Shown piece after piece: positions 1-59,970 of a stretch of 64,000 bases of DNA. Source of the stretch: Malacoraja senta (taxonomy: Eukaryota). The stretch spans positions 15,748,001-15,812,000 of the forward strand of contig CM075988.1 of the NCBI GenBank assembly GCA_038087875.1, in the 5' to 3' direction. How positions within the stretch are numbered: position 1 is the stretch's first letter; every line of letters begins with the position of its first letter. A program made the translations under genes and the position numbers. The notes beneath the pieces are model-generated. The model was not told the DNA's origin and did no database searches. It was given only the letters and a program-made list of their open reading frames with translations.

Positions 1-570
1 AGGAGGCCCAGGACAGAAAGGTCGGATTCGGAATGGGAGGGGGCGTTGAAGTGCTGACCTAAGCAGTCTTTCCAGGTGCGGCAGAGGTTCACCTGCACCT
101 CCTCCAACCTCATCCACTGTATCCGCTGCTCGAGGTGTCAGCTGCTCTACATCAGTGAGACCAAGCATAGCTTCGCCCAACACCTCCGCAATAACCAACC
201 TGATCTCCCGGTGGCTCAGCACTTCAACTCCCCCTCCCATTCCGAATCCGACCTTTCTGTCCTGGGCCTCCCCCATGGCCAGAGTGAGCCCCACTGTAAA
301 TTGGAGGAGCAGCACCTCATATTTCACTTGGGTAGTTTACACCCCAGTAGAATGAACATTGACTTCTCCAATTTCATGTAGTTCCTGCTTCTCCCTCTTT
401 CCCCTCCCCAGCTCTCCCACAGCCCACTGTCTCCGCCTTTTCCTTTCTTCTTCCCGCCCCCACTCCCACATCAGTCTGAAGAAGGGTTTTAACCCGAAAA
501 GTCGCCTATTTCCTTCACTCCATAGAATCTGCCTCACCCGCTGAGTTTCTCCAGCATTTTTGTCCACGTT
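1..570 (+). mobile_element. Penelope-like element 3' fragment (GIY-YIG endonuclease remnant plus pLTR with hammerhead-like core)
   Basis: ORF 76-381 reads QRFTCTSSNLIHCIRCSRCQLLYISETK...PVAQHFNSPSHS...LEEQHLIFHLGSLHP.RMNIDF, typical of the PLE GIY-YIG C-terminus. It is followed by CTGAAGAAGGG-N6-CCCGAAA at ~477-499 and the repeat tail seen many times in the window. Confidence 0.85.
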
Positions 571-574
571 GACC

Positions 575-828
575 AGTTCACCCTAGTTCTATGTTATGCT
601 ACTTTTACAATCACTCCCTACACTCTAGAGACAACTTTATAGATGTCAATTAACCTACAAACCTGTATGCCTTTAGTATGTAGGAGGAAACCGGAACACC
701 TTGAAGAGACCCATGCAGTCACAGAGAGAATGTGCAAACTCCACATAGATATCATCCGAGGTCAGGAATGAACCCGGGTCTCTGGGACTGAGGCAGCAGC
801 TCTACCAGCTGTGCGACTCTGCCACCAC
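575..828 (-). mobile_element. HE1-like tRNA-derived V-SINE
   Basis: Reverse complement of the same SINE found at 10365-10642 (tRNA head, central GTTTCCTCC.ACATxCxAAAG domain, TGTAGGTTAATTG). Ends approximate. Confidence 0.7.
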
Positions 829-1067
829 CTTAAAGCTTTGCCCTCTAGTTTTTGAAACTTCCACCCTGTGGATATTGACAATTGAAATATTACCACTGCT
901 GACTTTAATCATTTTAATGCATCAAAACAGAGGAATTAACCATTTTCTGGTTCCTCAGCCAAGTACATGATGCAGGAGTTTGAAGCTCATCAGTAATGGA
1001 AGGCAATGAAAAGTTTAACATCAAACGACACAAAGATCTCCATCACAAGGTGCTTTGTGCCTGGGAT

Positions 1068-1215
1068 ATTTAGTTTAGTTCAGAGATACAGCGCAGAAAC
1101 AGGCCCTTCAGTCCAGAGTCCGCACCGACCAGCAATCCCCGCACATTAACACTATCCTACACACACTGGGGACAATTTACATTTATATCTAGCCAATTAA
1201 CCTACAAACCAGTAT
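1068..1215 (-). mobile_element. HE1-like SINE 3' fragment
   Basis: TTTAGTTTAGTT tail plus GAGATACAGCGCAGAAACAGGCCCTTC, the reverse complement of the CR1/HER1-type SINE tail. Confidence 0.7.
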
Positions 1216-1241
1216 TCCCTTGTAATATTTCTGCCACTTAC

Positions 1242-4200
1242 CATTCAGAGGTGCTGGGGTTCCAGCGGTCAAAAACTCTGAAGCAAAAGAACAACATAAA
1301 TCAATGTTTCAGGGAGGAAAGGTGAGATAATAGCAAAGTAGAATTAAATCTAATCTAAACCTAAATTAAAGTTCTGCATTAATTGAAGCAAGATAACTTC
1401 TCAGATGAGGTTTCTGGTTAAATAATTACCCTTAAAGGGAGAGGAATATTACCCACCAGACCCTCCTCTTACACCAAAGGGAACCATAAAGGCTGGGTCA
1501 ATTATTCCTGTAGAAGCAGTTTAAGTTTGACTGCTTCCCTAGAAGATTGTACCTTCTTCCCTCGTGTATATGGGTCCAGATGAAACTGTGAAGGTTTGTG
1601 TTGTCAATCTTTCATTGGTGAAAATTCCTCGCTTCGGTCTCTTTCTACCAAAGCAGTCCTGTGTGGTTTACAAGCAGAGAACAAGAATTATATATCATCA
1701 CATAGCACCAAAGGAGAACATTTCTGCTGGCCTTAACAACAGTGTAATTCATCACATCCCTCTGCTTTTTCTCAATCATGCTACATTTTTTGTTCCCTTT
1801 CAAGTATTGTTCCAATTCCCTTTTGTAAAATTACTATTGAATTTGCTTCCCCCCGCCCTTTCGGGCACCACATATCAACTTTGGACATAAACAAGCATTC
1901 CCTGTATTTACCTTTGGATCTCTTGCCAATGTTAAATTAGTGCGTTTGATTTAACACACGAGCAATACCATAAGTGGTTTCTCCAATCCTACACAGCCAC
2001 ATAGGAGTCATTAACATGGACAGTAACTGCTGGGGACTAACAGTTTGTCTCAGAGAATCAAAGGAATGTAGTGTAATACAGAGCTAGAAAGGGTCACCAG
2101 TATCCATTGGCACGTCCTTAGATTGCAGATTTACAAAAATATTAAACCTCGAGGAGAATTCCATGTGGAATGTTTTAGGGAGGAGGAAGGATAGATGGAG
2201 GGGGACTAACTGTGCACAAAGTTGCTCCAGATTAGATTGGATCTATTCTTAAGAGAGACTTGTAGCAAACCGTAAACTTGTACCCAAAGTCCACAACAAT
2301 AGTGCCAGAGGTCAGGATTGAACAGAGTTTGTTGAGGCTGTGAGGCAGTAGCTCTTCTAGCTGTGCCACTCTGCCACCCAGCAATGCAACCTGGCCATGT
2401 CCATCTCACAAGCTGAAATGTGCAAATGGTGGGCACTCACTTGTAGCAAAGTCTGACAGGTTTTGGCTTCACAAAGCCTGGTAATACAGTGTACATAGAT
2501 TGTCGAGAGCTTCCTGTCCCATTGCTCGTTGAAACGGAAGGTATCAAAAACAAACGAGGATTTCCTGCCGATTCCATTTCCGATGATAGTTGTGCGAGGG
2601 CTAATGTTGCAGCTGGAGATGTAAAGATGGAGAATGGATGTTAGCAACGAAGCAAACATTTTATACCATCCCGATCTTGTCTCCGATTTAATATAAAATC
2701 AAATCAGTTTGGGTTCAGAGACGTTACCCAGTGAAGAAGGTATATCCAGTGTCAAGCGAGGAGAGATTAAATGGAGATGGTGTGGCAAAACAGTGATCCA
2801 GGAAGACGTTAAAGCTGAAAATCAAACACAGATAATCTATTAGACACACAGACTTCAGAAACAATTCATCCCTTAGTTTACATCCTTGGACAGTTTCTTC
2901 CCAGCTGTTATCAGGCAACTGAACCATTCAACCAACAACTAGAGTATAGTGCTGAGCTACTATCTACCACATTGCAGACCCTCAGACTATCTTTGATCGG
3001 ACTTTCCCGGATTATATCTTGCACTAAACGTTATTCCCATTATTCCCTTTATCATGTATCTGCACACTGTGGGTGGCTCGATTGTAATCATGTATTGTCT
3101 TTCTGCTGACTGGTTAGCACGCAACAAAAGCTTTTCACTGTACAATTGACAATAAACTAAACTTGCCCACTCCTATCTCTAAATTCCTGAAGGACGGCAA
3201 GTTCTGGATAAGATTCTGATGCCCAGAAGTCATTCTTCAAGTAAATACCAGCTAGATATTGGAGGGGGCTCATCGTGGCCAAATTAGTTCTGGCAACCCT
3301 CTTAGCCAGGATTACCAGATGACTGTCTCCTTGGTTCCTGTCTGACTTAGACTTACTGAAATCATATAATGTTGCTGAATATAATGTTGTACTTCTCCCG
3401 TACCACTGGTAGCAAAATAAAGGGACAAGAGAACATCACCTTAAAATTGGAACTGATTTTGGGTGTTACCTCCTTATACACAGGCTATTCGAAATTTGTA
3501 ACGTTCTCCCCCAAAATGCTGCAGATTCCAGTGGGATGGGTGCTGGGGCAGGTATCAGTTGATGTTTTAAGTCAACTTTTGTTTGTTAAAGTTGTGTGGG
3601 ATTTAAACCGAGTAGATGCTGTTGACTTTCCAATCCCACTCACCCACTCCATGCCCTGAAGGTGATCAAGAGCAGCAGCTTCAGTCAGAGCCTGATTGCA
3701 CCAATGTGCAAACGGAGAGACATAGGAAGTCCTGTTTACCAGCTGCGATAAGGTTATATAATGCGCATAAATAACTGCACTTTTTTAAAATTAATTGTAT
3801 TTTAACTTGTATTTTAACTTGTTAAGTATGGAAGCTATTTGTGGTGTTATGTCTGTCTTGAAGCTGTCGTGGCATTGTAATTTCCTGCAAAGGATTATTA
3901 AAGGTATAATCAATCAATCAATCAAACCTCAATCTGTTAGACGTGGAACATGCCCAAAGGGCTAAATGTCCTTCTCGTGTTCCTGTGTTTACTTACTTTG
4001 AAGATAGATTACCAATGCTGACTTCAACATAAACCTTATATCCGAGTGGAAGACCTTGGTCAGGAACGATCAGCGGTGAAATGTAGTCTTGGTCCTGTTC
4101 AGAATAAATGCAATGAAAATTATAAAGGTATTGTGAAATCTTTGGTGCCAAATCCCTAACTGCACAACAAAGGTCTTACAGGTTGCAGTAAGTAATCTCA

Positions 4201-7200
4201 TATGCTCCATCCTTGTTCTCGCCGTGTAAATGGCCTGTCCCACTTAGGCTATTTTTAGGTGACTGCCGGCGACTGTCATAGTCGTAGCAGGTCGCCGAAA
4301 AGCCGGCGACTGGGTCCCTCTTCGACATAAAATTTGAAATAGAATCATACTTTAACAACAAAAGAAAACCCAAGTCAGCACCGGCAATAACCTACGTCAT
4401 CCTGGAGACAACCTACGACAGCACCTACGTCAGGAGACGTCCAGCTACGTTCATTGGCGTCAAGCTAAATGTCGCCGAAAGGTTTTGAACATTTCAAAAT
4501 CCAGCGGCGACCAGAAAAAACGCTACGATTCTTTGGGCAACTGAGGAGACTACTCACAACCATACAGGCGACACCCCAGCGACCATGTGGCGACAGCCTA
4601 GTCGCCTGTGGTCGCCTAAAAAATCGCCTAAGTGGGACAGGGGCATAAAGAGTTCTCATTCAGTAAAAGCCCATTTAATGTCTTAACTCGACCATGTTAT
4701 TTACGGATTCCCTCAGACCCTTTACATATGACTTTATTTGGATTATCCTTCCTGAGTCGAAACAAATGAAGTTGCCACAAATCTTCAATTAATACTGGCT
4801 GCCATTGTGGGCTATTCATATTCTGGAACTCATAAACCTGAAATTGGACCGAGTTCAAGCCAGCCGACAAGGCAAAAAGGTCCCTAACTCATTGCTTACA
4901 AATAACAAAAGGACACAAAGTGCTGGACTAACTCAACGGGTCAGGCAGCAGCTGGATAGGTGATGTTTCAGGTCAGAACCCTTCTTCAGACTCTAAAGCA
5001 AGAGGAGTCAAAAGAGTTAGAGGGCGAGGACAAGTTTTTCCAGATGGAGGAGTGTACTAAGAGAGGAACATTGAACGGGTCTCTGTTCAACCAAGGACCT
5101 TCTATGTTTTTACAAATTGCACATCATAGCCATTGGCCAATTTTACGATTAATTATTTAAATATATGTGCTAAACTAAATCATTATGGAGCCATTGCTCA
5201 TGTTTAGACAGAGGCAGACAAGTGTTGAAGCCAATAGGACAATTTAGAAATATTTGACATGGATTGCGAACTAATCGACAGGGAAAATCAATAACATAAC
5301 CCAACTCAGTTTGAGATCCAGGCAACATTGAAAAAAAAATTAAACTTCAGATTCTTTGCCATGTATGAAGGGATGTTCGACATTTTTCAGACAATTGGAC
5401 GAGTTTCATGAAACAAAACCTGGATTATTTAGTTTCTCGGTTTCTGCTGCTTGTATACAGTCGCTGCCAAAGGATCAAACTGCTAAACATTACCTCTCAG
5501 TTCATCCATATCAGATAGTTGACTGGTAACAAGAGTGTACACTGTGTACAAAATGTGTTGCAGCAATTCAAAACCAACTTCAACAACACAACCTAGAAGA
5601 GCAACAGGCACACAGTACCATCACCACCTGATGGTCACCATCCTGATATTAAAATATCATCAGGTCAGATCTAGAAACTAACTACCACCACTGTGGAGGT
5701 AACAAGCGCCAGGAGCATAATGGTTCAACTGAGTGGCTCATCACCACCATGTCAAGGATAACTGGTGGATGGCCAATAAATGCAAACTTGTGCATACAAT
5801 AAATATATTTTCTTTTCTTTTTCAAATCACTCATTTCAAGTAATCTCTCTTTTTTTCCAATGGACAAGTAATGCTACGTGATGTGATGCTCGATATAAAT
5901 GGTGCCTTGGATAGTTGGCTGCTGGAACCAAACTTTGGTGCGCCAACAGCAGCCATCCACAGAACCTTTTTGGGTTTGTCTCAATACACAATAATCAGTG
6001 TTGCAGCTATACATCTCATGATTGTTTGTTCGATATATCATTGAAAAGTCAAGTTGAGTTTATTGTCATATGCATAAAGACGGTGAGGAACAGGTACAAT
6101 TAAATATTTTGCTTGACGGTGTTTTTGCTGAGGTATAATGTGTTGGCGTGGGATTAAGAGATGGGGAGTCCTTTTACAAGATGTGTAAATTAGTAATTCT
6201 CAGTATAACCAATGGAAATACTTACATCAAACAGCTGCAGGCGGAGAGTGCTGCTAAAGCTACCGTTCCTTGTGGCCACTGCAATAGAAATGGAAGACCT
6301 GAATGAAACAAAGACAAAGAATGTGAGGTGAGGAAGTGACTGTCTGCAGAACCAATTTCCTTGGACTCATTGGGTTCAATCTATGGAGCACCTGTTTCTG
6401 TGATATTCATTTCTGCCATAAAACAGACAATGCTGGAAATACTCAGCAGATCAGGCAGCATCCGTGGAGAGTGAAACAAGGTTAATCTTTCAGATCATGT
6501 TACATCCATTTCTCTCCCATCCCTCCCCTCCCCCCAATGCTACACTGCCTGCTGAGTATTTTCAGCATTTCTGATCCTATTTCAGAAGTGCAGCATCTAC
6601 TGTTTTTTACTCTTTAATTTCAATTCATCAGCTTGTTCACATTCCAACAGCATTGTAGTTAAAGGCATGGTTTCAAAGACCAAGATCGCTGTTATCTTAT
6701 TGTAGTGATCATTCATCATACGAGCAGTTGAACACTTGATTCTCACTGAACAAGATCCACAACCATTCACCCTTTAGTCAAAGCAGGGATCTCTCTGTTG
6801 CCCATGTCAAAAGCAAGCGGAACCACAAACTAAACCACACTGTACACCTATCCCAAACATGGACTTCTCTTGCTGTAATGAACAATTATATTTATTATCT
6901 GACCTTAATTACACACAATTACCTAATCACACGTAGGGAGACTCTCAGCTTCATACAATCTTTTTTTTTTTTCATCATTCACTAACTCAAGGTCTCTCAG
7001 TACTTTACTCCCATGAAGTGCTTACTGGAAGTTGTTGCAAAAAGTAAATTTGGCATAGCAAGATGCCACAGATTAAAGGTTAATGATCATACAAACTGTT
7101 TGTGATACTGATTCAGGAATAAATATTGGCAAAGAAATTAGAAACATTTTAAAGAACTTCTTCCAAAATTAGTGTGACTTTATTTTCACCAGAGCGGACA

Positions 7201-10200
7201 AAATCAGGCCTTGGTTTAATCTCTCTTCCAAACCAATGCACTTCTTCTTGTGTATGGCGTGCACAACCTATTTGATCTTATTTGATCGTGCACGCCAGGT
7301 AGATTGCATTCGTCAAAACAGGGCAGACCACGTGAAGGTTGCAATCTCCCACCCCACCAAGGCACTCTGGCATCACAACACTTCCTCAGTGCTGCACTGG
7401 AGAGTCAGATTAGATCCTCTACTCTAGTCTCAAGACTGGGGTTTGAACCCACAACACAAGAACAAGTTTGTAGACAGATGAGCTGAAGATGAGGTGCTGA
7501 ACACTGTCCTAGAGAAAAGCAGAGTTTTTTTGTGGTATGTGGGCTACTTTGAAGCAGATGATATGCTCAATGTCACACTCCTGTTTGTGGAAGCTTCCTC
7601 TGTACAAATTAGACGCTGCATTTCCCACAAGGTGACTTTGCTGCAAAGTTGAACAATTTTGTAATTTTGCAAATTGTGAAGGCACTACATAAATACCAGA
7701 TCTTTCTTTCTTTTAATGTATTCCAGAAATATATTTCAGGTCAATCAGTTCTCAGCCAAGTGTCCAGCTCACGAAACATTGATGCTACTTGCATTATCTG
7801 CTTTCAATTTTACTACCCAAAGCATTGTCTTTCAGGTGACGCTCCAGGTAACAGATCAGCTTCATGTTAAAGATCCTAGGGCATAACGTGAAGGCCTAAA
7901 GTTTCTGCCTACAATTTTCCCCTCAGTGGATCTCACCAAAAGCAGATGAACCAATCCTTCATACATTGCTTTTAAGAAGGAACTGCAGATGCTGGAAAAT
8001 CGAAGGTACACAAAAATGCTGGAGAAACCCAGCGGGTGCAGCAGCATCTATGGAGCGAAGGAAATAAGCAACGTTTCGGGCCGAAACCCTTCTTCAGTCT
8101 GAAGAAGGGTTTCGGCCCGAAACGTTGCCTATTTCCTTCGCTCCATAGATGCTGCTGCACCCGCTGAGTTTCTCCAGCATTTTTGTGTACCTTTATACAT
8201 TGCTGTCTTCCTGTGGGCAAATTGACTACCATATTTACCCAATGAACAATTGTGGCAACACACCAAGGCAAGCAGACGAATGTGAGTGCTTATGAGTTCC
8301 CGAGAGACATAGCTGAATAAATGAAACCTCTTTAATTATTTTATGCCATTACATAGTTCTAAAGAGCACTTACGTTATGAGTCTTGTGCTGTTAAGTATA
8401 TATTCAAGAGGGTACTTGCAGGAGAATTTATAGTACAGTCTTGGGCTGTAACTGATCATCAAGGAATGATTGGTCGGGGGGTCTATAAAACCAGAGATGA
8501 CCACGGACTGAACACTGGAGAAATGGGCAAAAGTTTCCGTTCCCGGACCCTCATCAAGAATCTGGAACACCGACAGAAACTAATAAACATTGACAATTAA
8601 CAAGCTGTATTTCTTGTCATTAACAATACAAAGTAAACAGTTGTAACTTGAACACACCCATGTTAATCCTACAGCTCGATCACCCTCCACCCTGACTTGC
8701 CTCTCAACCAGAATTGTAACCCCAATTCTATCTGGGTCTCTGCCTCTCTCCCACCCTCCCTGTATCTCTCGTCAAAGCTCTAAATCTTGAGCGTCTGCTT
8801 TTGGAAGCAAGCAAGTTCAACAAGTTTCAGGTTGCAGATACATGGAATAGGCAATTTCAAGAGTCTAAGGTGTTTTATTGTCGCTTGCACCCACATTAGA
8901 ATAATGAAATTCTTACTTGCTGCCTTTACAGGCACATTAAAGTTTATGAGTTAATGAATAGGTTTATTGGCCAAGTATGTTCACATACAAGGAACACAAT
9001 AGCACAACAAATATATTTACAACAATTTATCAGTTGTTTTAGATAAACCAGACCACGACAGTGCAAGCAGAGTGCAACTGTAGAGGTGCAAGGTCCAATT
9101 TGAAAATAGACTAGTCGAGATAAAATTGCCTTATTTAAAAATCTCCCAATCCCTGTCTGCTTTTCTCTCGAAATCTCTGCCGATAACTCATCCCCTGTCA
9201 CTGATCAAGTGCCTTCCAAATCTATCCGAATCACTCATTTTAATTCTTCATTGTGCCTTTTGTCTAAATCCTTTCATCTTTGGTGACACAAGAGACTGCA
9301 GATGCTGGAATCTTGAACAAAACTGGAGGAACTCGGCATCTGTGGAGGTAAATGGACCGAGGACGTTTTGCGTTCTCAGACTGCAGAAGTCTCCCAACAC
9401 AAAACGTCATCTGTCCATTTCCCTCCATGGATGCTGCCTGACCCACCAAGTCCTCCAGCAATTTGTTTTTTGTTTACCTCTTTGGACTTTGGCCCTCATT
9501 TGTAGGTGTGGAACTTTACATCCTATCTCTTGTATTTTAAGTTGCCATTCATGAGCCCATGTAGTGTGCTATCCGACCAGTGGTTCAGTTAAATCCTGAT
9601 TTCTGACCATCTCCGTCCCTTTAATTCTCTCCTACGCGAAGGTTTTTTTTGGGTGCTCCGGTTTCCTCCCACACTCCAAAAAACGTGTAGGTTTATAGGA
9701 TAATTGGCTTCTGTAATTTGTCCCTAGTGTGTAGGATAGAACTAGTGTACTGGGGTCTGTTTCCAATTTGTATCTTTCAACTAAAATTAAAGCACCTACT
9801 TTGAAATTATTGCCACAGTTATTGTCGTCGACGTCATTAACAATGATAGAATATTGAACGACTGGGGGTGTGGCCGGGACATCCACTCTCCCGTTACACT
9901 TTGTGTCATTATATCGGCCATTTAACGCAAGGGTTAAAGGATCAAAGCCAGCAAAGAGTGAAGGGCAAAGGTTAATGGATAGGTTGATCAACCGAGCACC
10001 ACAATCAATGGCGATATCCCGGTTATCTGAAACAGATAAGACATTGACGCAACAAGATTCAGAACTAAACAGTATTTGGACATTGCAGCAATTTCTTAAT
10101 ATACATTTCACTTGTAACATCCAAATGGATGCCAGACCACCATGAGACACCTCAGTGTTGCTGTATTACATCCCACATCAGTCGCTGACATTGTGACATA

Positions 10201-10933
10201 CCTGCACCCCGACCGTAATTGTAATTTAACTTGCGATCCTCACACCAACACTAGTGATTAACACGATATATTTCACACTAACACTAATATAACACCCACT
10301 TAGACATTCTTTATCTCCGCATCCTTCTCTGTAACTGATACACACCCCTCTGAGATGCAGATGGGGCAGCACAGTGGCACAACGGTAGAGTTGCTGCCTT
10401 ACAGCGCTGGGGATTGACGAGAGGTGCTGCCTGTGTGGAGTTTGTACGTTCTTCCTGTGACCAGGTGTCTTCTCCGGGTGCTCTAGTCCTCCTACATCGC
10501 AAAGATGTGCAGGTTTGTAGGTTAATTGGTTTCTGTAAATTGTCCCTAGTGTGGAGAATAGAACTAGTGTAAGGGTGATTGTTGGTCGGCATGGACTCAG
10601 TGGGCCGAAGGGCCTGTTTCCACACTGTATCTCTAAACTAAAGAAATAAGCTATATGCCACATTGCAAATGTAAAGCATTCCTCACTATGCATCACAGCC
10701 CTCTGATATATCCTACACCCTCAGTGAAACATATCTCTCCCCTCACTAACTATTTGCGCGCTCCACACTTCTCACCATAACATTGAAAATCCCCCCATGA
10801 CCATCACTAACAATCAGGATGTACCTGGATATCTGTTGTACTGAGCATCACAAGGGTAACTGGCTGGTGCGCATGGAATAAAAAATTGATGCAGTGATAG
10901 AGAGAGAAGTAACATCCTTGGTGAGGCAGCCAT
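1242..10933 (-). CDS. ZPLD1-like zona pellucida domain protein (cupulin-like, divergent paralog); 9 coding exons, 3' end unresolved
   Basis: Exons with GT-AG ends and compatible phases: 10933-10825 (MAASPRMLLLSLSLHQFFIPCAPASYPCDAQYNRYP, signal peptide); 10026-9800 (DNRDIAIDCGARLINLSINLCPSLFAGFDPLTLALNGRYNDTKC...CGNNFK); 8561-8374 (...ISGFIDPP...ISYSPRLYYKFSCKYPLEYILNSTRLIT); 6298-6226 (SSISIAVATRNGSFSSTLRLQLFD); 4094-3997 (DQDYISPLIVPDQGLPLGYKVYVEV); 2814-2728 (FNVFLDHCFATPS); 2612-2441 (C...FDTFRF...LSTIYVHCITRLC); 1658-1553 (furin site RKRPKR, EHP-like TVSSGPIYTR); 1277-1242 (EFLTAGTPAPLN). Motifs and exon sizes (73, 98, 172 nt) match ZPLD1 as I recall it, but identity is modest, so no symbol is given. 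Confidence 0.9.
2200..2380 (-). mobile_element. Degenerate HE1-like SINE
   Basis: GAGGTCAGGATTGAAC...GCTGTGAGGCAGTAGCTCT...CTGTGCCAC is the reverse complement of the SINE tRNA head. Confidence 0.55.
2885..3162 (+). mobile_element. LINE 3' end (Rex1/Babar-like tail)
   Basis: GACAGTTTCTTCCCAGCTGTTATCAGGCAACTGAA...TGACAATAAACTAAAC; near-identical family member at 54350-54625. Confidence 0.65.
4230..4646. mobile_element. Non-autonomous DNA transposon (MITE), PIF/Harbinger-like TIRs
   Basis: TIRs GGCCTGTCCCACTTAGGC...GCCTAAGTGGGACAGG in a TAA context; same family as 47938-48415. Confidence 0.75.
7120..7460 (-). mobile_element. Old Deu-domain SINE (SacSINE1-like) interrupted by a ~130 bp repeat
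   Basis: GGCCTTGGTTTAATCTCTC...CCTCAGTGCTGCACTGGAGAGTCAG...GGGGTTTGAACCCACAAC matches the reverse complement of DeuSINE head/core. Similar remnants near 13170-13260, 15620-15700, 52050-52230 and 57780-58000. Confidence 0.55.
7972..8193. mobile_element. Palindromic Penelope-derived short element (two inverted pLTR ends)
   Basis: 95-bp arms 8003-8097 and 8099-8193 (2 mismatches) centred on T8098; each arm has CTGAAGAAGGGTTTCGGCCCGAAACGTT. Confidence 0.85.
10365..10642 (+). mobile_element. HE1-like tRNA-derived V-SINE, near full length
   Basis: tRNA-like head (GGCACAGTGGCACAACGGTAGAGTTGCTGCC), V-type core (TGTGTGGAGTTTGTACGTTCT...AAAGATGTGCAGGTT) and CR1-type tail GGGCCGAAGGGCCTGTTTCC...TCTCTAAACTAAA. 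Confidence 0.8.
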
Positions 10934-11129: not shown

Positions 11130-11650
11130 ATCTGTGGAAGGATGTGCTGGCTCTGGAGAGGGTCCAGAAGAGGTTTACAAGAATGATTTCAGGAATGAGT
11201 GGGTTAGCATATGATGAGTGTTTGACAGCACTGGGCCTGTACTCGCTGGAGTTTAGAAGGTTGAGGGGGGACCTCATTGAAACTTACAGAATAATGAAAG
11301 GCATAGATAGAGTGGATGTAGAAAGGATGTTTCCACTGTTGGGAGAGTCTAGGACCAGAGGTCATAACCTCAGAAAGAAAGGGTGCTCTTTTAGAAAGGA
11401 GGCGAGGAGGAACTTCTTTAGTCAGCGGGTAGTTAATCTGTGGAACTCATTGCCACGGAGGGCTGTGGAGGCCAAGTTAGTGGATATTTTTAAGGCAGAG
11501 ATAGACAAATTCTTGATTAGAATGGATGTCAAGGGTTATAGGGAGAAGGCAAAAAATGGAATTAGGAGGCAGAGATCTGCCATGATTGAATGGCAGAGTA
11601 GGCTGGATGGGCCGAATGGCCTAATTCTACTCCTATAACTTGTGAACGTG
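11130..11650 (+). mobile_element. CR1/HER1 LINE 3' fragment
   Basis: ORF 11144-11638 LERVQKRFTRMI...LGLYSLEFRRLRGDLIETYRIMKG.D...RTRGH...RRNFFSQRVVNLWNSLP is the canonical CR1 ORF2 C-terminus, followed by the GGGCCGAATGGCCTA tail. Confidence 0.9.
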
Positions 11651-14600
11651 AATGCAAATCCAAGCTAATTCCTATTCTCAGCTGAAACCATTAAAAACAG
11701 TTACATCACTGGGCAAGCTGGACTAGAGGTTACAAGTTCGAGTCCGACCATCGCAGATTAATAATTCCCAATTAAATCTTGTATTGGAAAATTAAAGCTA
11801 TCAGGTTGTTACTAAAACTCACGTCCTCTATAATGAGACCTGTGCACATTTTGGCCCGAACTAACCAGGTGATTCTTAAATGCTGCTTTGACCAGATCAG
11901 CTTCACTGGCCAAGATTTCCTTGCCTCATATTCAGGTGCAAGCATTCACTGTTATACTCGGATAGTTACAAATTGCAGAGTTCCCTACCCCCCACCCATC
12001 CTGATTCCAGGTCTAGGTTGGTAATCTCAGGTAAGTTAGGATTTTGCTAAACATTAAAAAAAAGACAACACACAGCCAAGAGAGAGATATGGTTCCACAG
12101 AGTTCTGCTAACCTCAAAATGGAAAGCCTATTAAATGGTCCGAGGGACTTCTTTAGCAATTCCTAAGATAGGGTTGCCAACTATGTATTCCACTTATAAG
12201 AAACAGGCTGAGAGTGGATGGGGTCACAATGTATAGTAGATACATTCAGGCTCAGCAATTTAAAATGGGCCCCAACTAACCTCATGTTGCCATGGACATA
12301 GCAGTAAACTAATGTTAAGTAAATGAAAGGAAGATATAATACAGGATGTGCTGGTTACTTGTTCCTGAAAATTAAACATTAAACTGTAAAGGGAACACAC
12401 AAGAAAACGTAGACAAAAACCCCTTCCGGGTTTCGGCCCGAAACGTTGCCTATTTCCTTCGCTCCATAGATGCTTCTGCACCCGCTGAGTTTCTCCAGCA
12501 TTTTTGTCTACCTTCAATTTTCCAGCATCTGCAGTTCCTTCTTAAACACAAGAAAACTTTGTGGGTTCCATTACATCCCCGCGGGACAATCTTGCAAAAT
12601 GTCTTGGTGGTATTAGATGAATCCCAGCAGTATTGTCTAAAATTCACAGCTACTTGGGCTAGAATTATGTTGTTTCCTTATGATTTAATGGACATATCTG
12701 CATTTAAAAGACATTTGGACAGGTACGTGGATAAGAAAGGTTGAGAGAGTTATGGGCCAAATGTAGGCAGGTGGGACGTGTGAACGGGGCATCTTCAGAC
12801 AAAGGGTCTGGACCCAAAACGTCACATATTCCTTTTCTCCAGAGCTGCTGCTTGACCCGCTGTGTTACTCCAGCATTTTGTGCCTATCTTTGGTGTAAAC
12901 CAGCATCTGCAGTTCCTTCATACACATCCAGTCTGATAATAATCAGATTAAACGTCTTAGAATAATAACATTATTTCTCATTACTGGAGTAACAGCTTAC
13001 TCCAATAACAAGAATGAAGTTAATGCTGTTTAAAGGAAAACTAGCCAGACTAGCCAGGGTAACTGATCAGTCCCACTTCAATAGCTCAAAATAAACACTT
13101 GTACATTCACCAGAGAGGGCAGATAATGCCTCAGATTAACATCCGAGCTGCAAGACTGCACACAACAGTGCAAGACTCCCTCAACACAGTGCTGAGATAC
13201 AAGATTACATTTTGTATACAAGTCTCTGGAATGTTACTCAAATCCACGGCTTTGATTCACGACGGACATGAATGTCTCAGTCCAGGAAGGACAGTCATAT
13301 TCCTTTAAACAAATATATGACACGCTTTCAGAATCCCACTTAGTTGCTTCACAGAAACACCACCATTGTTTAAATGTTTGTGTATGTGGTTCACAATCTT
13401 GCTAGACACTTGTCTCAATCCAATTCCTTGAAAGACAAAAAGTTTAATGGTTAAAGCCCATTCAAAAAATTGTACTCACCGCATTCAATTAATTTTGTAA
13501 ACATTTCTCATTCATTACCCAAGGCTGACACTGGTCCTTAGCCGACACTCTCAGGCATTTGTAAACTGCTTCATTACAAAATAATTTCAGAGGTGTGTCG
13601 TTGAGAATATTTGATATCCTAAACAAAGTGCTCTGAAAGACCCTCCTCTGTCTCCACCTCTAACACACCTTAATTCTTAACCCTCAGTTTCCCATTAATG
13701 TTTTCATATTCCCCATTTTGGTGAGGATCCCCTGCACTTGTCCAATCCCCAGATGTTCAGGTTTGGTTGGTGTCTCTCCCAAGGGGTCCATTACATATAA
13801 CCCCTCCACAGGATTAACGGCATGATCATGAGTCAGAACTCATCCCATCTCTTGCTGAATACCAGAAACCTGCACAGAGAGAGGACATAGGCAAATAGTG
13901 GTGGTTCAAGATCTGTGTGGTCTTCTCCCTGTCCTTGGAACTGGTTATTGGAACATTTCCTCATTTCATTCAAACATTTTTTTTGATTTAGGTTCTAATG
14001 TTAAAAATGAAGCTGTACAATAATTGTATAACTGTTATGTCAATCGCCTTATCCCTGTACAATCGCTTCTAATAAAATTAATTCAAAAAAAATAAAAAAA
14101 TTGTTAGGTGTAGGAATTGGGGAAAACGTTTCAGAGACAATAACAAATTATCTTTGATAATATTTTTGTTGCTGGGTGATATTGAAGCATTTTTCTCTGT
14201 GCTGTATTTGGCTGGGTGCATTTGAAGGGCCATTTAAAAAGTTTTACTTAGTGTTAACCCCTGAGGACCTGGCCTGTGTGCGACTGAAGGTTTTTATCTG
14301 TCAGTAATCCTGGTGGACCTGCCCTGGGTGTGGTGTGAACACGCGGTATGCACTGGAAAGTGTCTCATTGTCAGCCCTGATATCGCAGAGTGTGTGAAAT
14401 GCAGAGAAGATAGAGTCAGCAGAGAAAGGGAATATTTCTCCATTTGCATGTGATGAGAGACCGTCGCTTTAGATAGAAATATAGTTGCAAAAACAAAATG
14501 AAAGGATGCAAAGGGGGGGTAGTCTCTGCTTTTATCTGCATCAGTAACGTTGAAGTGTTTCAGTACAATGACACTGCTCTGTTAGAACACAATCAGACAG

Positions 14601-21046: not shown

Positions 21047-24000
21047 TCAGTGCTTGGTATTTACCCAATGATACCGATCATTGTGAGGATATGTGAACAT
21101 ATGGTTGGAAACTCTGTACATTTTGTAGACTTTTTGGAGAGGGTAGCAGCCTTTAGTATCTTCTGTGATAGTTTTCTTGTGTGTAAACCTGGGCCAGACA
21201 GCTGCATGGTATGTGTAGTAATCATACTGCAAGAAAACAAAATGACAATTACTTAAAGCAACTCAGTTACAATACGTGGTCCAAACAGTTCAGTCTAGAG
21301 ATTCAGCGTGGAAACGGGCCCTTCAGCCCACTGAGTTCATGTTCACCACCAATCACCTGTTCACACAATTCCTGCATTACCGAACTCAATCATCAAGTTC
21401 GCCGACGACACCACAGTTGTGGGACGTATCACTGATGGAGTCGAGTCAGAGTATAGAAGTGAGATCGACCGGTTGACCAAATGGTGCCAGCACAATAACC
21501 TGGCTCTCAACACCAGCAAAACCAAGGAACTGATTGTGGACTTTGGAAGGAGTAGGATGGAGACCCACAGTCCTATACATATATACAGAGTTCCCACAGA
21601 CAGCACACAGAGTCTGGTTCAAACCTGGGTCTCTGGCACTGTGAGGCTGCAACTCTACCAGCTGTCCCCCCCCCCCCCCCCCATCACAATGTGGTATATT
21701 TTTGTAGTATCTTCAGATTTGTATCCAATGATCATCATGTTCAATTAATGCACTGCCTCAGAACAGACCTGGAGATCTCTCTACCCAACAAAGTGTTCTC
21801 TTATAAAACTAGATTTCTCCATTGACATTTATGGTATGGTTTACATCCAACTATTTCCAGTTTGTTTCAATTGCCCAGATTCTTCAGCATTTGCCCATTT
21901 CATATTACTTCCACTTTAGATAATATTGCCCACCAGTCAAATCCCAAACCAACTTCAGGGAAGTTGTCCATGTCCTTCAGCGTTGCAAGTAAATTAGATC
22001 AGGGTACGGTCTGTCGTTTAATTTTCCCTGAGCTAATCTACAATTGAAGAAAAATACTAAAGATTCCTTCCAATTTCAGATTTACTAACTGTCCTCGCCA
22101 CATTTACTTAAATTTTTTTTATTTTTTTAAAAATAAACAGCTGATCTGTAGAAAATAGATTTAAATCTGCAGTACCCTGCATACCAAATTAGAGACAAGA
22201 GTAAAGCATTTTGGCCAATGGTTTAATATCATTTTCATTTCACCTTGTACAGGTTAGCACCATAATGAATGGATGGATCTCAGCCTTGGGACATTTCAGC
22301 ATTGAAAATTACAGGCAAGCGTCATCCTGTCCCCTTTGTAAGCATCTGCTTCCAGCTGTTACTGGATAGATTAAATCCATAAGCAAGTAGGTTCACATTG
22401 AATTACCCCTTTTCAGAAAGGAAAAACACTTGGCACCTTTTGCCCCAAGCAACAGAGTTATATACCCTGTAGCAGAGTGTTATTTCTTAATGGGAAGCTA
22501 ATCAAGGGTATCATTTAACAAAACACTCGAGTATCAGTAATACATACTTATGCAACTGACAATATGCTAGCCAGTTTTTGTTAATAATCTTAGAACAGGA
22601 TTTTAACTTGCAAGTATAGATAGCAAGATGATTAACAATGTTGATCCTGTCTCATTAAGGAAATATTAAAACAAATATTTTGCTCACTCTTTATTTCAGT
22701 TGACAAACATAAATGTACTCAGTTTTCAGGGCAACATGTTATTAAGACACCACAGCTTCTTCGGTCTGAAGAAGGGTCTCGACCAGAAACGTCCCCTATT
22801 CCTTCACTCCATAAATGCTGCCTCACCCGCTGAGTTTCTCCAGCATTTGTCTACCTTAGATGTTTCCAGCATCTGCAGTTCTTTCTTAAACAGCTTCTAA
22901 ATAGTTTGTTGAAGATTGCTACAAGGTGGAGCACCAAGACAATTAAAAAAAAATCAAAGTTGGCTTTCAAGAAGCACAAGCTTATTGGCAATGGGTGTTT
23001 GACTGACTGTCACAAAATCCTTTTAGCTCTTAAAATACTAAAATATCTAAATTGAGAGCCACTGGAAATACCTTGGCAGTGAACTCTACTACTATACCTG
23101 GTAGATGCTCTTTGGGTTAATCACAGTGGGGATGGTTTGGGGTTCTTCTCCAGGGATTTCTCCTCCCCCAAAGCCGTTGCCCATGTAAATACTGTTTGGG
23201 TTGCTCACGATTGGTATGGTCTTTGTTTCTGAAGCTGCAGTGAAGTTTTCCTCTTCCCCATGGGCATTGCTTCGAGCATAAATTGCACTCAGCTCTTTGT
23301 TATAGTTTTCCTCATCTGAAGATGTACCAGAGAAATAATCCGAACTTGCTCGTTCTGCTGCATTGCTGATGTGCTTGAAGACTTCCTGATTAGAGTTCTG
23401 TTCCTCCAACCTCGTTATAATGAATGGCTGGTTCTTTTCGCCACACCTGAAATAAGAGTACATCAGTCAAACAATTGACTACCAAACTTATTTATACCCC
23501 AAGTCCCCATCAGTTTGTGGGAGAACAGTCTCTGATGATTTTAAGTGATTCAGGAACAACTTCTTCCCAACAACCATCATTACTAACACCAACAAAACTA
23601 CAAACTTTCTTGGCTATTGTTCAGACCTTGAAATTCTGGGGGCACTAATTGACCAGAATATTTAAACTTAACCCTTACCTACACCACACTTCATATGGAT
23701 CCACCCATATAGTGAGCTCCTTCGGCAGTTCCAAAGAAGAATATTCAATATTGCTTTCTACACAAGCCTGAAAGAGGACCAGATCCCGTGGTTGATTCTT
23801 GTTTATTCTGATACACCTGGAGAAAAACATTTTGTCAGGGAACACAACAAGATAATATCAGCCAAATTGGGCCATGTGTGATGGCCCAACAACACTCTCC
23901 TCAAATGCTCTCTTCTGTGAAAGGAAAATTGAAACAAGATGCTTCAAACCACCAAATTCCATTTTATTGGTGCTAGATTTTCATATGAACACTATTTGAA

Positions 24001-24938
24001 ATTCTTCTTCTCACATCTAAAAAATATTTTAAAACATCACACTGCTGTGGGGCTAATCCCAGTAAGTATGCTAGGACCCCCCCCCCCCCCCCCCCCACTT
24101 TGAAGAACCAGTTGCAGCCATGCGAGAATTAATTTCTCCATCCTTCTAATTTCACCGCCAATATGGATTTAAAATTAAACAGATGCAGTTGTCTTAGTGG
24201 GATGCAAACCTTCAGCTCAGAATCATGAAGCTAGGATTATTTGTCCAGTTAAAACTACCATGTTTACTACAGTGAACATTCCAATTCACCCAGAAGAATC
24301 TAGTTTGATTGTTGCCCACAAGCAATATTTAAAATGAATATTGGCAGTTTTCCAGGTGTATTATCTTTATCCAATATAACCACAAAACCAATTGTCTGAT
24401 GATATTTCTTCTCCCCACCCAAAGGAAAAGAACCAATTTCACTGAACTAGGCTACTCGACAGCCCCACAACTGTCAGAAAGGAAGGGACATTTCAATGCT
24501 TTGAAAGGCACTAAACAATCAAGAGTCCATGCTTGTTCAGTTTCAATGTAAATCACAATCCCAACAAGGTCGAGGTTCAGACAAGGCAATAATGCCTTCT
24601 TAGCAAGATCAGCCATGATCACAATGAATGGCTCGAAGGGCCAAATGGCCTCCTCTTGCACCTATTTTCTATGTCTCACAAAAGACACATTTATTGGGTC
24701 ATGTATTACAACCACATCCAAAGCAATATATCCAAATGTTTCCAGCTAAGACAGTACATTCCTACCTGTAGGCTTGTCCTCTAGAAGGGTTTCCACAGTA
24801 CCAGTGGTTCTTGTATTTTTGAAATAGTATTTTTGTCAGTTTGTTCCCAAATTTCTCCATCTTCTGCTTGCTGAATTTCTCATTTTTCTTCACCAGTCGG
24901 GTGATGAAAACTACTGTGGCAGCAATCTCTTCTTTCAT
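21047..24938 (-). CDS. BTG4: BTG4 (BTG/Tob family, maternal B9.10-like), copy 1; 4 coding exons, 279 aa
   Basis: Exons 24938-24766 (173 nt, [18 protein letters not shown]...[14 protein letters not shown]); 23816-23679 (138 nt, CIRINK...[17 protein letters not shown]; boxes A/B); 23446-23098 (CGEKNQPF...[15 protein letters not shown]...NPKSIYQ); 21226-21047 (...[10 protein letters not shown]). All GT-AG with consistent phase. RASSD/NPKSIYQ motifs and synteny with miR-34b/c and HOATZ favour BTG4 over BTG3. Confidence 0.93.
21370..21585 (+). mobile_element. LINE RT fragment (Rex1/Babar-like) inserted in a minus-strand HE1 SINE (21290-21665); copy at +9065
   Basis: Translates [52 protein letters not shown]; SINE tail lies to the left and SINE head to the right. 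Confidence 0.75.
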
Positions 24939-27166: not shown

Positions 27167-27366
27167 NNNNNNNNNNNNNNNNNNNNNNNNNNNNNNNNNN
27201 NNNNNNNNNNNNNNNNNNNNNNNNNNNNNNNNNNNNNNNNNNNNNNNNNNNNNNNNNNNNNNNNNNNNNNNNNNNNNNNNNNNNNNNNNNNNNNNNNNNN
27301 NNNNNNNNNNNNNNNNNNNNNNNNNNNNNNNNNNNNNNNNNNNNNNNNNNNNNNNNNNNNNNNNNN
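27167..27366. other. Assembly gap (200 N)
   Basis: Run of exactly 200 N. Confidence 1.
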
Positions 27367-30300
27367 CTAGAGATGCTGTGTGGCCTGTTGAATTACTCCA
27401 ACATCATGTCTATCTGCACTAATTCCCTTTGATTCTCCCCACATCCATAGAATCTCCTGCTCAAAGTTTCATCTCGGAACTGGAGTCAATTTAGATACCA
27501 ACTAGCAAGTGTTTGACATTTGTGGAGACAAACACCTGAAGGGAACCAGTGGTGAGAACTTGCAAGCTCCACACAGTCAGCAGCAGAGTTCACAACTGAA
27601 GCACCGTCAATGGAGTTGGAGCAGCTGCTTTACTTACTGGATCAGCGGACTACTCATTTATAAATCAAAAAGAGCTTTGAATGTCATTGATACATACTGT
27701 TACCCATGCCATTTTAGCAGCTCAGGCCAAAGCCAGCAAGGCAGCTGAATGAAGAGAGTTATGTTATTGTGGGTAGAATGAATCTTGGGGGATTGAAAGT
27801 AAATAACTGCCTGCTCAATGGTGTCCTTGCAATCAGAGCCTGAAAAAAAACAAATCAAAGGATCAATCTTGGGAATCAAGATGAGTCTCATTCTTCACAC
27901 TGATGCCGCTGTTCCACACATGCCAAGGATGTGGGCACCCATTATGACCAAGGTACCATCTTTTGGACTTTTATCTGCAGCAGGTCCTACTCCTTTGCTG
28001 TTGGTTTCTTGGATTGAGATCCAGAGGTAAGGGATTAGCATTGCACAACATGTATATGGTGGTGCAACTCTAGAATAGGTGTCTCCATGCAATGGACACC
28101 TCGTCCTTCTAGGCGAGCTGCAGTTTGGTGGGGTATCAAGTAACATTGGCAAGTTGTGCAGAGCTTCCTGTTTATAGTATACCATTGAATGGGGGTCTAG
28201 AATGGATACAATAAGTCCCTGCCTGCCATCATGCCACTCCTCACAAGGAGAGCTACAACATTTGCTGCACCATCAGTGTTCCAATGCAGTAAACCCTCAT
28301 TTTTAAAAGTCTCTATTAAAATAATATTGGTTATAGCAGGCAGATTTACCAAACTTCACTGCCAGGCCAGCCCCTGGCTGCATCTGCCATCACTGCCTGT
28401 ATTGAGACCTTGGAGCTTTGTAGCTTAGGGCAGGCAAGGCATTGCTTTAATGTTTCAGCTGAAAAAAGGCACCTCTGTCAGTATGGTTCTTGCTCTGCTT
28501 AAACTTTATTTCTGGCCCTCTGCACATGAACTGACATGCAGTACCACAAATGCCACTTTTATAGCAGACAATCTGCAATATCTTGGGGAACGGCTGCTAA
28601 CCAGCAGCCGTCCATTAAATTCACTTTTTTTAAACTTAGTTTTTAGTTTTTCTTGTCTTTGTCTCGTGGGGAATTTTGACTTTTAATGTGGGGGGGTAAG
28701 GGGAAACTATTTTCTAGGTCCCTATCTGGTCGGTGAGGCAGCCCCGTCGACACGTCCTTGTGGACTACCAGTGGGCGTGGAGTGGCGTTTCCTGGCGGGG
28801 ACTGCCCAGCACCTTCAGCTTCGGTGGCAGCACAGCACTGGAGCACTATCACGGAGCGGAGCGGGCGATGCCTTGCCTGGGTTGCCGTGCTGGAGCTCCG
28901 GTGAGCTGTGGCCGCCTTGCTCAACACCTCCGGGCTGCGGGACTGCGGAGCGGCCAGCCGCGGGCGGCGGCGCCGACCCTAACATCGGGAGCCTCGGAGC
29001 TCCAAATCGGCGTGGCCTTGTTGGCTTCAGGTGCCGCGGACTCCGGTAGGAAATCGGCCGTCCCAGGTGGCCCAGCCGCTGCGAGGACTCTCCCGACGCC
29101 GGGGCAACAACACCCGGATAGAACGGCCAGGAACATCGGGCCTCCGTAGAGGCAACTGTGGAGGCCTCAATAGGCCTGACTTTGGGTGAACTGGGGTTGG
29201 GGACTGGACATTGTGCCTTCCCCCACAGTGATAATCATTGTGGGGGGGGATGATTTTTGTCTGTAAATTATATTTTATTTTGTGTCCAAGATGGCTGCCG
29301 GAGGGGGGAGTGGACGCTGGCGCGCTTTAGCAGCTGCTGCTCTCTTCCATATTGTGTTTTTTGATTTTTGTTTTTGGATTGAATTCTGGCTTTAATTTCT
29401 GTACTCGTGATGTCTTTACTATTTATTTCATTCCGCTTACATGTTTCTACACTTTGTTAAACTTTGTAAAGTGTCCTTGAGACTTTTGAAAGGCGCCCAT
29501 AAATAAAATGTATTATTATTATGGTCTATTATAACAAGAATTTGCTGTACGGGGACATAACAAAGGCAATTTCCCCATAAAAAAACTACACAGTTGTACT
29601 ATGTGAAGTCACTGCAGAAATGAAGCTTTTAGTCTGGAATGACCCAAGAGCAAATGATCTCTACTGCATGGTGCAAGGACAACTGAACCACTGCCATTCA
29701 CAGCACAAACTTTAGTTTCAAAAACCTTCATTTGGTATCAGCCAAGAACACAGGACAAGTTGGCAATCAAATTTAAAAAGTGGCTTTTTATTTAATATAC
29801 ATTTTCAAACATTTCCATTGGAGATTAAAAAAAACGTCTAATGCCAAGTTAAACACTGACCTATTATAATATAAACATCTGTAATAAGAATTTAAATCTT
29901 AACATAATAAAATTTGTCCTCGAGGAAGTTTAAGAGATCGTGTAAATAAGTGTAGATGAGCTCAATGCTAGAACACCAAATTCATCTCCTATAGAACGTC
30001 AGAACACGCAGACTTGTCAGTAAATCTTCTGGATTGCCAGAAAATTGACTTCACAATACGATAAAGTAAGAGAAGGAAAATAGAGCAAGATAAAGGAAAG
30101 GACAATTCAGATCAGTGCTTGGTATTTACCCAATGATACCGATCATTGTGAGGATATGTGAACATATGGTTGGAAACTCTGTACATTTTGTAGACTTTTT
30201 GGAGAGGGTAGCAGCCTTTAGTATCTTCTGTGATAGTTTTCTTGTGTGTAAACCTGGGCCAGACAGCTGCATGGTATGTGTAGTAATCATACTGCAAGAA

Positions 30301-37006: not shown

Positions 37007-37239
37007 TGTAGCGGCACCTGCTGGTGCCTTGGGGTAGTCGAACCCTTTGATTGGCTACCTCGGACACGTGACCGTGGGGAGGGGTTTACCCACACTTTTT
37101 TGGGCAAACCCATTAATTCTGTTCACCACCGTTGTGGTAGCGACACTGTTATTTAGTTGTCTTAAGACCATCGTTGTTTTCATTTAACTTTCGTTATAAA
37201 GTTCTTTGGAAATCAACCTACATTCTCGACTCTGCTAAA
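37007..37239 (+). repeat. 5' LTR
   Basis: Direct repeat of 42309-42541; about 24 mismatches by eye. Confidence 0.92.
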
Positions 37240-37267
37240 CTGGTGACCCCGACACGCCCAATTGATA

Positions 37268-59150: not shown

Positions 59151-59231
59151 GGCCGGGTTTGGAGGCAGTGTAGTTAGCTGATTGCGGACAATGACGGTCA
59201 ATCACTACATACACTACCATCAAAAGAGGCC
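59151..59231 (+). ncRNA. MIR34B: pre-miR-34b
   Basis: 5p AGGCAGTGTAGTTAGCTGATTGC (59163-59185); 3p AATCACTACATACACTACCATC (59200-59221). Flanks CGGGTTTG...CCATCAAAA resemble the miR-34b precursor; first of the pair. Confidence 0.93.
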
Positions 59232-59890: not shown

Positions 59891-59970
59891 GCCTGGTTGC
59901 TAGGCAGTGTAGTTAGCTGATTGGTAACTGATAACTAAGCAATCACTAACCACACGGCCAGGCAAAAAGG
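59891..59970 (+). ncRNA. MIR34C: pre-miR-34c
   Basis: 5p AGGCAGTGTAGTTAGCTGATTG (from 59902); 3p AATCACTAACCACACGGCCAGG (59941-59962), matching miR-34c-3p, followed by AAAAAG. Confidence 0.95.

Follow-up and report, generated by a model that had tools for sequence, protein, structure and literature searches.

A distinct ZPLD1 paralog of ancient origin beside BTG4 in the skate Malacoraja senta, seemingly missing from mammals and mislabelled in public databases

ZPLD1, or cupulin, is the major protein of the semicircular-canal cupula. Its filaments form only once the propeptide bearing the external hydrophobic patch (EHP) has been lost (PMC9692296). In zebrafish, zpld1a marks the support cells of the cristae and was undetected in neuromasts (PMC9851615), so the cupula of the neuromasts must be made of something else. 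A relative of ZPLD1 with a zona pellucida (ZP) module was studied here in a 64,000-nucleotide stretch of Malacoraja senta (GenBank assembly GCA_038087875.1, contig CM075988.1, positions 15,748,001 to 15,812,000), hereafter called the window. The gene lies on the minus strand directly downstream of BTG4. The original prediction had described it as an intact but divergent ZPLD1 paralog beside BTG4, and both parts of that description were borne out. As a paralog it is both distinct from ZPLD1 and of long standing, and it seems to be missing from mammals. Databases already contain the gene, unnamed and under a wrong label.

Gene structure and place in the ZPLD1 family

The ZP gene was rebuilt as nine minus-strand exons running from position 10933 to 1242, and every border was a canonical AG/GT. 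The spliced exons comprised 1096 nt, equal to 365 codons plus 1 nt, with zero stop codons. The exons and a possible additional first exon are as follows.

13480..13504, minus strand: possible first coding exon, 25 nt; ATG, eight codons plus 1 nt, donor GTGAGT at 13479-13474
10825..10933, minus strand: exon 1, 109 nt, with a conserved ATG (10933) and the predicted signal peptide; phase 1 end, GT donor, hydrophobic core at 10915-10862
9800..10026, minus strand: exon 2, 227 nt; phase 0 end, ZP-N core with four conserved cysteines
8374..8561, minus strand: exon 3, 188 nt; phase 2 end, end of ZP-N with an invariant C-x-Y-P motif and EYILNST (8405-8385), resembling an internal hydrophobic patch (IHP)
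6226..6298, minus strand: exon 4, 73 nt; phase 0 end, interdomain linker
3997..4094, minus strand: exon 5, 98 nt; phase 2 end, start of ZP-C
2728..2814, minus strand: exon 6, 87 nt; phase 2 end, ZP-C with the motif LDHCFATPSP
2441..2612, minus strand: exon 7, 172 nt; phase 0 end, C-terminal half of ZP-C with four cysteines
1553..1658, minus strand: exon 8, 106 nt; phase 1 end, RKRPKR (1646-1629) and the EHP-like FTVSSGPIYTR (1592-1560)
1242..1277, minus strand: exon 9, 36 nt; phase 1 end, donor GTAAGT at 1241-1236, linker ahead of the membrane anchor

The features on which the original prediction was built (nine exons, an open 365-codon frame, a signal peptide, a ZP module, RKRPKR and an EHP-like patch) were all rebuilt in the window. 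The frame needed correction at both ends. It is open because the window edge truncates the gene, whose last exon lies beyond the window start. In Leucoraja, a 36-nt exon of identical size is followed about 1.3 kb on by a 179-nt last exon encoding the membrane helix and tail; a tblastn search with this Leucoraja tail against window positions 1-1241 gave no match. At the other end, the 25 bases from 13504 to 13480 matched without a single difference the first exon annotated for the Leucoraja erinacea gene (locus L004, 10001-10025), with flanks about 90% identical. This possible first exon joins an AG acceptor just ahead of 10935, and with it GT-AG borders were present in 10 of 10 in-window exons. 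The start codon may thus be that at 13504 instead of 10933, which would make the protein nine residues longer at its N-terminus. The skate product and the orthologs of Leucoraja, Pristis and Mobula had in common an N-terminus beginning MAASPRM. About 1.56 kb without a counterpart at the Leucoraja locus (11189-12753) lies in the intron that separates the possible first exon from the exon with the conserved ATG, and a 164-codon open reading frame (ORF) on the plus strand of this region (11144-11638) resembles the 3' end of a long interspersed nuclear element (LINE).

Relatives were collected in several protein searches. A phmmer search with exon 2 returned 154 representatives, all from the ZPLD1 family, with none above 49% identity, although the 90%-identity collection contains elasmobranch proteins that nearly equal the skate product in this exon. 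Absence therefore does not follow from an empty or weak outcome in the representative library. Further word-index searches started from a teleost match, from the ZPLD1 of a snake and from a profile that combined a frog protein with the window's exon pieces; the profile found eight elasmobranch orthologs. Identity to the skate product was 96% for Leucoraja (94% in the BLAST local alignment), 81% for Pristis, 79% for Mobula and 68% for the sharks Heptranchias and Pristiophorus. It fell to about 50% in bowfin, sturgeon and coelacanth and to 45-49% in teleost and frog proteins, with ray-finned fish and coelacanth members together spanning 45-51%. True ZPLD1 was only about 40% identical to the skate product.

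A maximum-likelihood tree of 66 sequences, unrooted, comprised three groups, A, B and C, each with a support of at least 100/98. Group A was true ZPLD1. Group B (100/99) held the teleost genes si:dkey-4p15.5, si:ch211-103f14.3 and si:ch73-261i21.5 together with coelacanth and frog relatives. Group C held the skate gene and its elasmobranch orthologs, and also members from bichir, sturgeon, gar, bowfin, teleosts (zebrafish si:dkey-103g5.3), coelacanth, lungfish and amphibians. The proposal that the gene had been retained particularly in chondrichthyans had to be abandoned on this ground. The skate product was placed in an elasmobranch sub-group (100/100) of group C. Group C roughly matched the species tree, the deep order of coelacanth, elasmobranchs, ray-finned fishes and lungfish plus amphibians being unresolved, and its branches were several times as long as those of group A, which indicates faster evolution. 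On sequence evidence, the skate gene is the ortholog of si:dkey-103g5.3 and belongs to a third branch of the ZPLD1 family that is older than the split between cartilaginous and bony fishes. A long-branch catshark protein fell in group B; therefore all three groups probably predate the jawed-vertebrate ancestor. Frogs and a caecilian carried two group-C genes on one contig or chromosome.

A skate ZPLD1 ortholog that had merely been relocated beside BTG4 was the alternative set out in the original prediction. Such a translocated gene would account for the exon phases and several exon sizes, which are those of ZPLD1. It would not account for an identity of about 40%, as true ZPLD1 proteins of a snake and of cartilaginous fishes still shared 69-74%. 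In addition, a separate true ZPLD1 was present in chimaera, in sharks and in one skate (Rhinoraja), and the tree placed the skate protein outside the ZPLD1 clade. Forcing the elasmobranch group-C sequences together with ZPLD1 cost 22 log-likelihood units (approximately unbiased (AU) test, p = 0.02). Relocation of ZPLD1 is therefore extremely improbable, and a distinct paralog is the preferred reading.

Exon structures of other species were obtained by an exact-match splice search on fetched loci. As stated in the original prediction, the phases and several exon sizes were those of ZPLD1. The true ZPLD1 of Takifugu flavidus (locus L005) showed the phases 1,0,2,0,2,2,0,1,1,0 after an additional 5' exon, compared with 1,0,2,0,2,2,0,1,1 in the incomplete skate gene, and its exons of 73, 98 and 172 nt were equal in size. 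The 73-nt exon was present in every ZPLD1-family gene examined. The group-C genes of skate, bowfin, wrasse, Denticeps and Xenopus had exons of 227/221, 188/191, 73, 98, 84/87 and 172 nt and the phases 1,0,2,0,2,2,0,1,1,0. For exon 2, the size of 221 nt is that of bowfin; the skate, teleost and frog orthologs have 227 nt.

Between the skate gene and its Leucoraja erinacea counterpart there were 32 differences in 1095 coding bases (97% identity), and the proteins differed at 13 of 365 residues. Across the locus, introns and flanks included, blastn blocks showed 87-95% identity to Leucoraja, mostly about 90-92%. The ratio of nonsynonymous to synonymous substitution rates (dN/dS) between the two skates ranged from 0.23 (NG86) to 0.29 (YN00). 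By these measures the gene is functional and under purifying selection. A decaying or non-functional copy, with a frame open by chance or only recently so, could also present a frame without stop codons in the window, introns full of short interspersed nuclear element (SINE) copies and a last exon cut off by the window end. It would hardly combine canonical splice sites throughout with the low dN/dS, a coding sequence better conserved than the introns, all 12 of 12 cysteines, the IHP, cleavage-site and EHP motifs, and intact orthologs from sharks to frogs. Decay is accordingly very unlikely, only marginally less so than relocation. The gene is already annotated in the little skate, and public databases carry it as "ZPLD1". 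Group C is without a name of its own, and no functional study of it was found in the literature searches.

A search centred on group C yielded no amniotes among the best 120 of 165 matches, whereas amniotes were abundant in the ZPLD1 search. Group C thus appears to have been lost in amniotes. The taxa that retain it are lineages with a lateral line.

Predicted protein and proposed matrix

The skate product begins with a hydrophobic N-terminal signal (aa 7-24) and contains 12 cysteines at aligned positions that are those of ZPLD1, along with eight N-glycosylation sequons. The motif EYILNST (aa 165-171) was assigned as IHP based on EYLVNNT of zebrafish ZPLD1, in which VITAGPIITR is the tested EHP (PMC9692296). 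In the skate product, RKRPKR (aa 323-328) and FTVSSGPIYTR (aa 341-351) are placed exactly as the cleavage site and EHP of the zebrafish protein, and the latter matches the EHP consensus ..s.GPl.... With exon 7 alone, the Pfam profile of ZP-C (PF00100) gave an E value of 5.5e-7 and 30.2 bits (cut-off 24.6) over profile positions 85-133; exon 6 matched weakly over the neighbouring positions 48-67. These were the only matches in Pfam searches with single window exons, ZP-N (PF23344) giving none on an exon alone, and single exons searched against PDB sequences gave no match. The 96% identical Leucoraja ortholog matched ZP-C with 2.7e-20 and ZP-N with 1.8e-5 (25.4 bits, cut-off 24.7).

The fold was predicted with AlphaFold for the Leucoraja ortholog, using an alignment of 48 family sequences. 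The predicted local distance difference test (pLDDT) score was 88-95 across most of both domains and above 90 in the exon-2 region, corresponding to ZP-N. The cysteines of ZP-N at model residues 45, 57, 80 and 107 were invariant across the 48 family members. The EHP was modelled as a beta-strand (residues 349-360) and the anchor as a helix (389-418). The last exon of Leucoraja, whose counterpart in the skate gene lies off the window, encodes a 19-residue hydrophobic stretch with a mean Kyte-Doolittle value of 3.07. In a Foldseek comparison with the PDB, the top match of the ortholog model was the polymerisation region of uromodulin (4wrn, E 2e-14). Other matches were uromodulin filaments, ZPD, ZP3, and the ZP-C domains of ZP2, betaglycan and GP2; template modelling (TM) scores against ZP-C domains were 0.6-0.75 by target length. 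With ZP-C, ZP-N, signal, cleavage site, IHP and EHP all found by sequence comparison or in the model, the skate product is predicted to be a ZP-module protein.

The product would be a type-I membrane precursor consisting of signal peptide, ZP-N, a linker with the IHP, ZP-C, the furin-type site RKRPKR, the EHP and an off-window membrane helix. By analogy with ZPLD1 and uromodulin, a cut at RKRPKR would free the protein of both EHP and anchor. The N-glycosylated ectodomain of about 300 residues could then polymerise head-to-tail into extracellular filaments and, by the same analogy, form a gel.

The question of where such a gel might be laid down was approached through the zebrafish ortholog si:dkey-103g5.3. 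Literature searches for this gene found no paper on it and no mention in a main text; it was present in two supplementary tables. In the first, it was enriched in one neuromast dendrogram node, being detected in 46% versus 18% of cells with an adjusted p of 6e-17 (supplement of PMC6363392). The same node also has sfrp1a and ovgp1, which are mantle-cell markers in Lush et al. 2019 (PMC6363392). In the second, a module table of ear and lateral line (PMC9851615), si:dkey-103g5.3 belonged to module 1 with coordinates nearly those of fndc7rs4 and tnfsf10l3. Module 1 also holds two group-B paralogs, and zpld1a and tectb are found in module 4 (PMC9851615). A 2025-26 preprint names the uncharacterised group-B gene si:dkey-4p15.5 as a strong neuromast marker, ranking at the top for one cluster of support cells (bioRxiv 10.1101/2025.09.30.679639). 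Salmon cupulin was considered as a group-C member and rejected, its peptides matching true ZPLD1 (PMC4219815).

The suggestion in the original prediction that the gene encodes a structural protein of a gel-like matrix gains indirect support, as far as the lateral line is concerned, from the zebrafish single-cell data. The likeliest matrix is the cupula of lateral-line neuromasts, which would be produced by mantle and support cells. This assignment is tentative; it is favoured because of the mantle-cell enrichment of the zebrafish ortholog and the lateral-line taxonomic spread, and is drawn by analogy from a distant ortholog. Other matrices are somewhat less likely but a serious possibility: the gel that fills the ampullae of Lorenzini, a membrane of the inner ear, an egg coat, a coat on skin or olfactory surfaces, or some further apical matrix. 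ZP-module proteins build diverse matrices, and the PDB matches include urinary, egg-coat and pancreatic filaments. The expression evidence comes from outside the cartilaginous fishes, and the zebrafish ortholog was detected in only about half of the mantle cells. Ampullary organs are of lateral-line origin and have a like taxonomic spread, except for most teleosts and frogs. That exception also counts against the ampullae, as the gene is kept in teleosts and frogs, most of which are without ampullae of Lorenzini. Moreover, the zebrafish ortholog co-varied with lateral-line and not with inner-ear genes, and the ZP proteins of egg coats belong to other subfamilies. The neuromast cupula consequently remains the first candidate.

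The BTG4 locus and the origin of the gene

The window is composed of vertebrate DNA of low GC content, crowded with SINE and LINE copies. The following neighbours of the ZP gene were identified.

23092..24938, minus strand: BTG4, directly upstream of the ZP gene on the same strand, with Pfam BTG matches
24938-24765 and 23815-23678, minus strand: BTG-domain exons of BTG4, Pfam BTG 1.5e-20 and 2.3e-14 over profile positions 1-58 and 59-106
within ORF 23463-23092, minus strand: C-terminal exon of BTG4, ending in a SNPKSIYQV-type motif
59156-59226 and 59895-59967, plus strand: two mir-34 hairpins, Rfam RF00456, 54.9 and 68 bits
63504-63950, plus strand: first coding exon of the cilia gene HOATZ; its ORF matches Pfam HOATZ-like at 4.4e-20 and lies in GC-rich DNA

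The position beside BTG4 claimed in the original prediction was thus confirmed, and the mir-34 hairpins and HOATZ identify the region as the BTG4 / MIR34B-C / HOATZ locus. This gene order is also that of human 11q23.1. The hairpin pair sits between BTG4 and HOATZ like MIR34B/C of mammals. BTG4 of the window was collinear with the BTG gene of Leucoraja.

The neighbourhoods of the ZP genes in other species were as follows.

Leucoraja: BTG (+), ZP (+), HMBS (-)
Bowfin: BTG (+), ZP (+)
Eel (Synaphobranchus): a single gene model fusing BTG and ZP
Denticeps and wrasse: C-type lectin gene, ZP, apolipoprotein gene
Takifugu flavidus, true ZPLD1 (L005 10001-17694): ZPLD1 with a group-B gene as its tandem neighbour, followed by an ALCAM-type gene of the Ig superfamily

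Linkage to a BTG gene was found in part of the species: BTG was followed by ZP on one strand in little skate and bowfin, and both were in one model in the eel, but the ZP genes of Denticeps, wrasse and Xenopus laevis lacked a BTG neighbour within 10 kb. The ZP gene would have lain directly downstream of BTG4 since the gnathostome ancestor. The tandem gene of Takifugu encodes 386 residues and, at 60-70% identity, belongs with genes of the si:ch211-103f14.3 type. Therefore, at least the group-B gene of this type is a local ZPLD1 duplicate.

In human, HMBS, CBL, MCAM, the APOA cluster, LAYN and BTG4 are located in 11q23, and ZPLD1, ALCAM and CBLB in 3q12-13, its classical paralog region. An origin of the skate gene with this 3q12-13 / 11q23 paralogy, in an early vertebrate genome duplication, is rather probable. 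It fits that groups A and C both hold cartilaginous and bony fishes and that their neighbourhoods differ, with BTG4 and HMBS in one and an ALCAM-like gene in the other. The alternative is a real gene that arose by single-gene duplication and transposition in an early vertebrate. Local duplicates clearly do arise in the family, as seen in group B in tandem with ZPLD1 and in the paired group-C genes of amphibians, and a tree lacking an outgroup, with an unstable order of A, B and C, leaves room for such an event. Against it, the presence of both fish lineages in A and in C moves the split back at least to the jawed-vertebrate ancestor. The neighbours also argue against a single-gene event, since they resemble a paralogon: BTG4, HMBS, apolipoprotein and C-type lectin genes beside group C, all of the 11q23 type in human, and an ALCAM-like Ig gene beside group A. 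Single-gene duplication is thus the unlikely but not negligible alternative, and genome duplication is preferred. Rooting relatives (TECTB, non-vertebrate or cyclostome) were sought among the lower-ranked representatives, and all named ones belonged to the vertebrate ZPLD1 family. On an unrooted tree with an unstable order of the three groups, an origin in the second of the two early rounds of genome duplication (1R/2R), as put forward in the original prediction, is plausible.

Altogether, the skate gene is quite probably a functional group-C ortholog encoding a cleaved, filament-forming matrix protein, and an old gene linked to BTG4. Several points weigh against this explanation. The tree is unrooted, without a lamprey, hagfish or invertebrate relative, and the branching order of A, B and C varied between runs. 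The paralogy argument relies on human map positions, and the loss in amniotes was deduced from protein database searches. Cleavage and polymerisation are read from motifs and relatives, and the membrane anchor was observed in orthologs, its exon being outside the window. The expression evidence stems from the zebrafish ortholog. The zebrafish signal is moderate, with si:dkey-4p15.5 and si:ch211-103f14.3 being present in about 90% of neuromast cells, and the group-B paralogs may be the main cupula proteins. Finally, module 1 is taken to represent lateral-line support cells on the strength of only two marker genes.

Two further observations concern the DNA around BTG4. The segment 18301-27166 was repeated as 27367-36231 (8,866 bases, 0 mismatches, 1 gap) on either side of a run of N (27167-27366), giving a second BTG4 copy about 9,066 bp further on. 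This copy would seem to come from overlapping contigs left unmerged in the assembly, an artefact rather than a true tandem duplication; the matching stretch of Leucoraja shows one BTG gene. Between BTG4 and mir-34, a GC-rich block (up to 0.61) at about 37200-41350 with overlapping ORFs for RNase H-like and integrase zinc-binding domains is a remnant of a Ty3/gypsy-type long terminal repeat (LTR) retrotransposon.

Comparison with known systems

As far as the window is concerned, the finding is unremarkable: a gene was correctly recognised that is already annotated in a sister species. Its wider meaning lies in the lateral line, whose neuromasts do not express ZPLD1, the cupula protein of the ear (PMC9851615). 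Should the family have three ancient branches, and should both of those apparently missing from amniotes be genes of neuromast support cells, they would provide a short candidate list for the lateral-line cupula and a clean example of gene loss along with organ loss. A broader scheme must be regarded as doubtful: the skate gene and the group-B paralogs would together supply the structural proteins of the neuromast cupula, and in cartilaginous fishes perhaps those of the ampullary-organ gel as well, after an early division of labour in the family that left ZPLD1 with the canal cupula of the ear; amniotes would have lost precisely these paralogs together with the lateral line. For databases, at least three orthogroups share the label "ZPLD1", which is a risk for orthology-based studies of inner-ear genes.

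The skate gene belongs to the same orthogroup as si:dkey-103g5.3 and shares its structure of 10-11 exons and, with skate, bowfin and eel genes, the place downstream of a BTG gene. The copy in the window differs only by its last exon, owing to the window edge. ZPLD1/cupulin shares the domain plan, 12 of 12 cysteines, the order of IHP, cleavage site, EHP and membrane anchor, identical intron phases and the exons of 73, 98 and 172 nt. It differs in its ALCAM-like neighbour, as opposed to BTG4 and HMBS, in its presence in amniotes and in its slower evolution; furthermore, in zebrafish the cristae express zpld1a and the neuromasts do not, in contrast to the ortholog of the skate gene, which co-varies with neuromast genes. 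The group-B genes resemble the skate gene in family, domain plan, absence from amniote matches and neuromast support-cell expression in zebrafish. In contrast, they form a distinct group in the tree, at least one member stands in tandem with ZPLD1 instead of beside BTG4, and they were detected in about 90% of neuromast cells, compared with 18-46% for si:dkey-103g5.3. Uromodulin was the best structural match of the ortholog and follows the same logic of precursor, cleavage and EHP release, but is only about 19-20% identical. It has additional EGF and D8C domains and is held by a glycosylphosphatidylinositol (GPI) anchor, not by a membrane helix.

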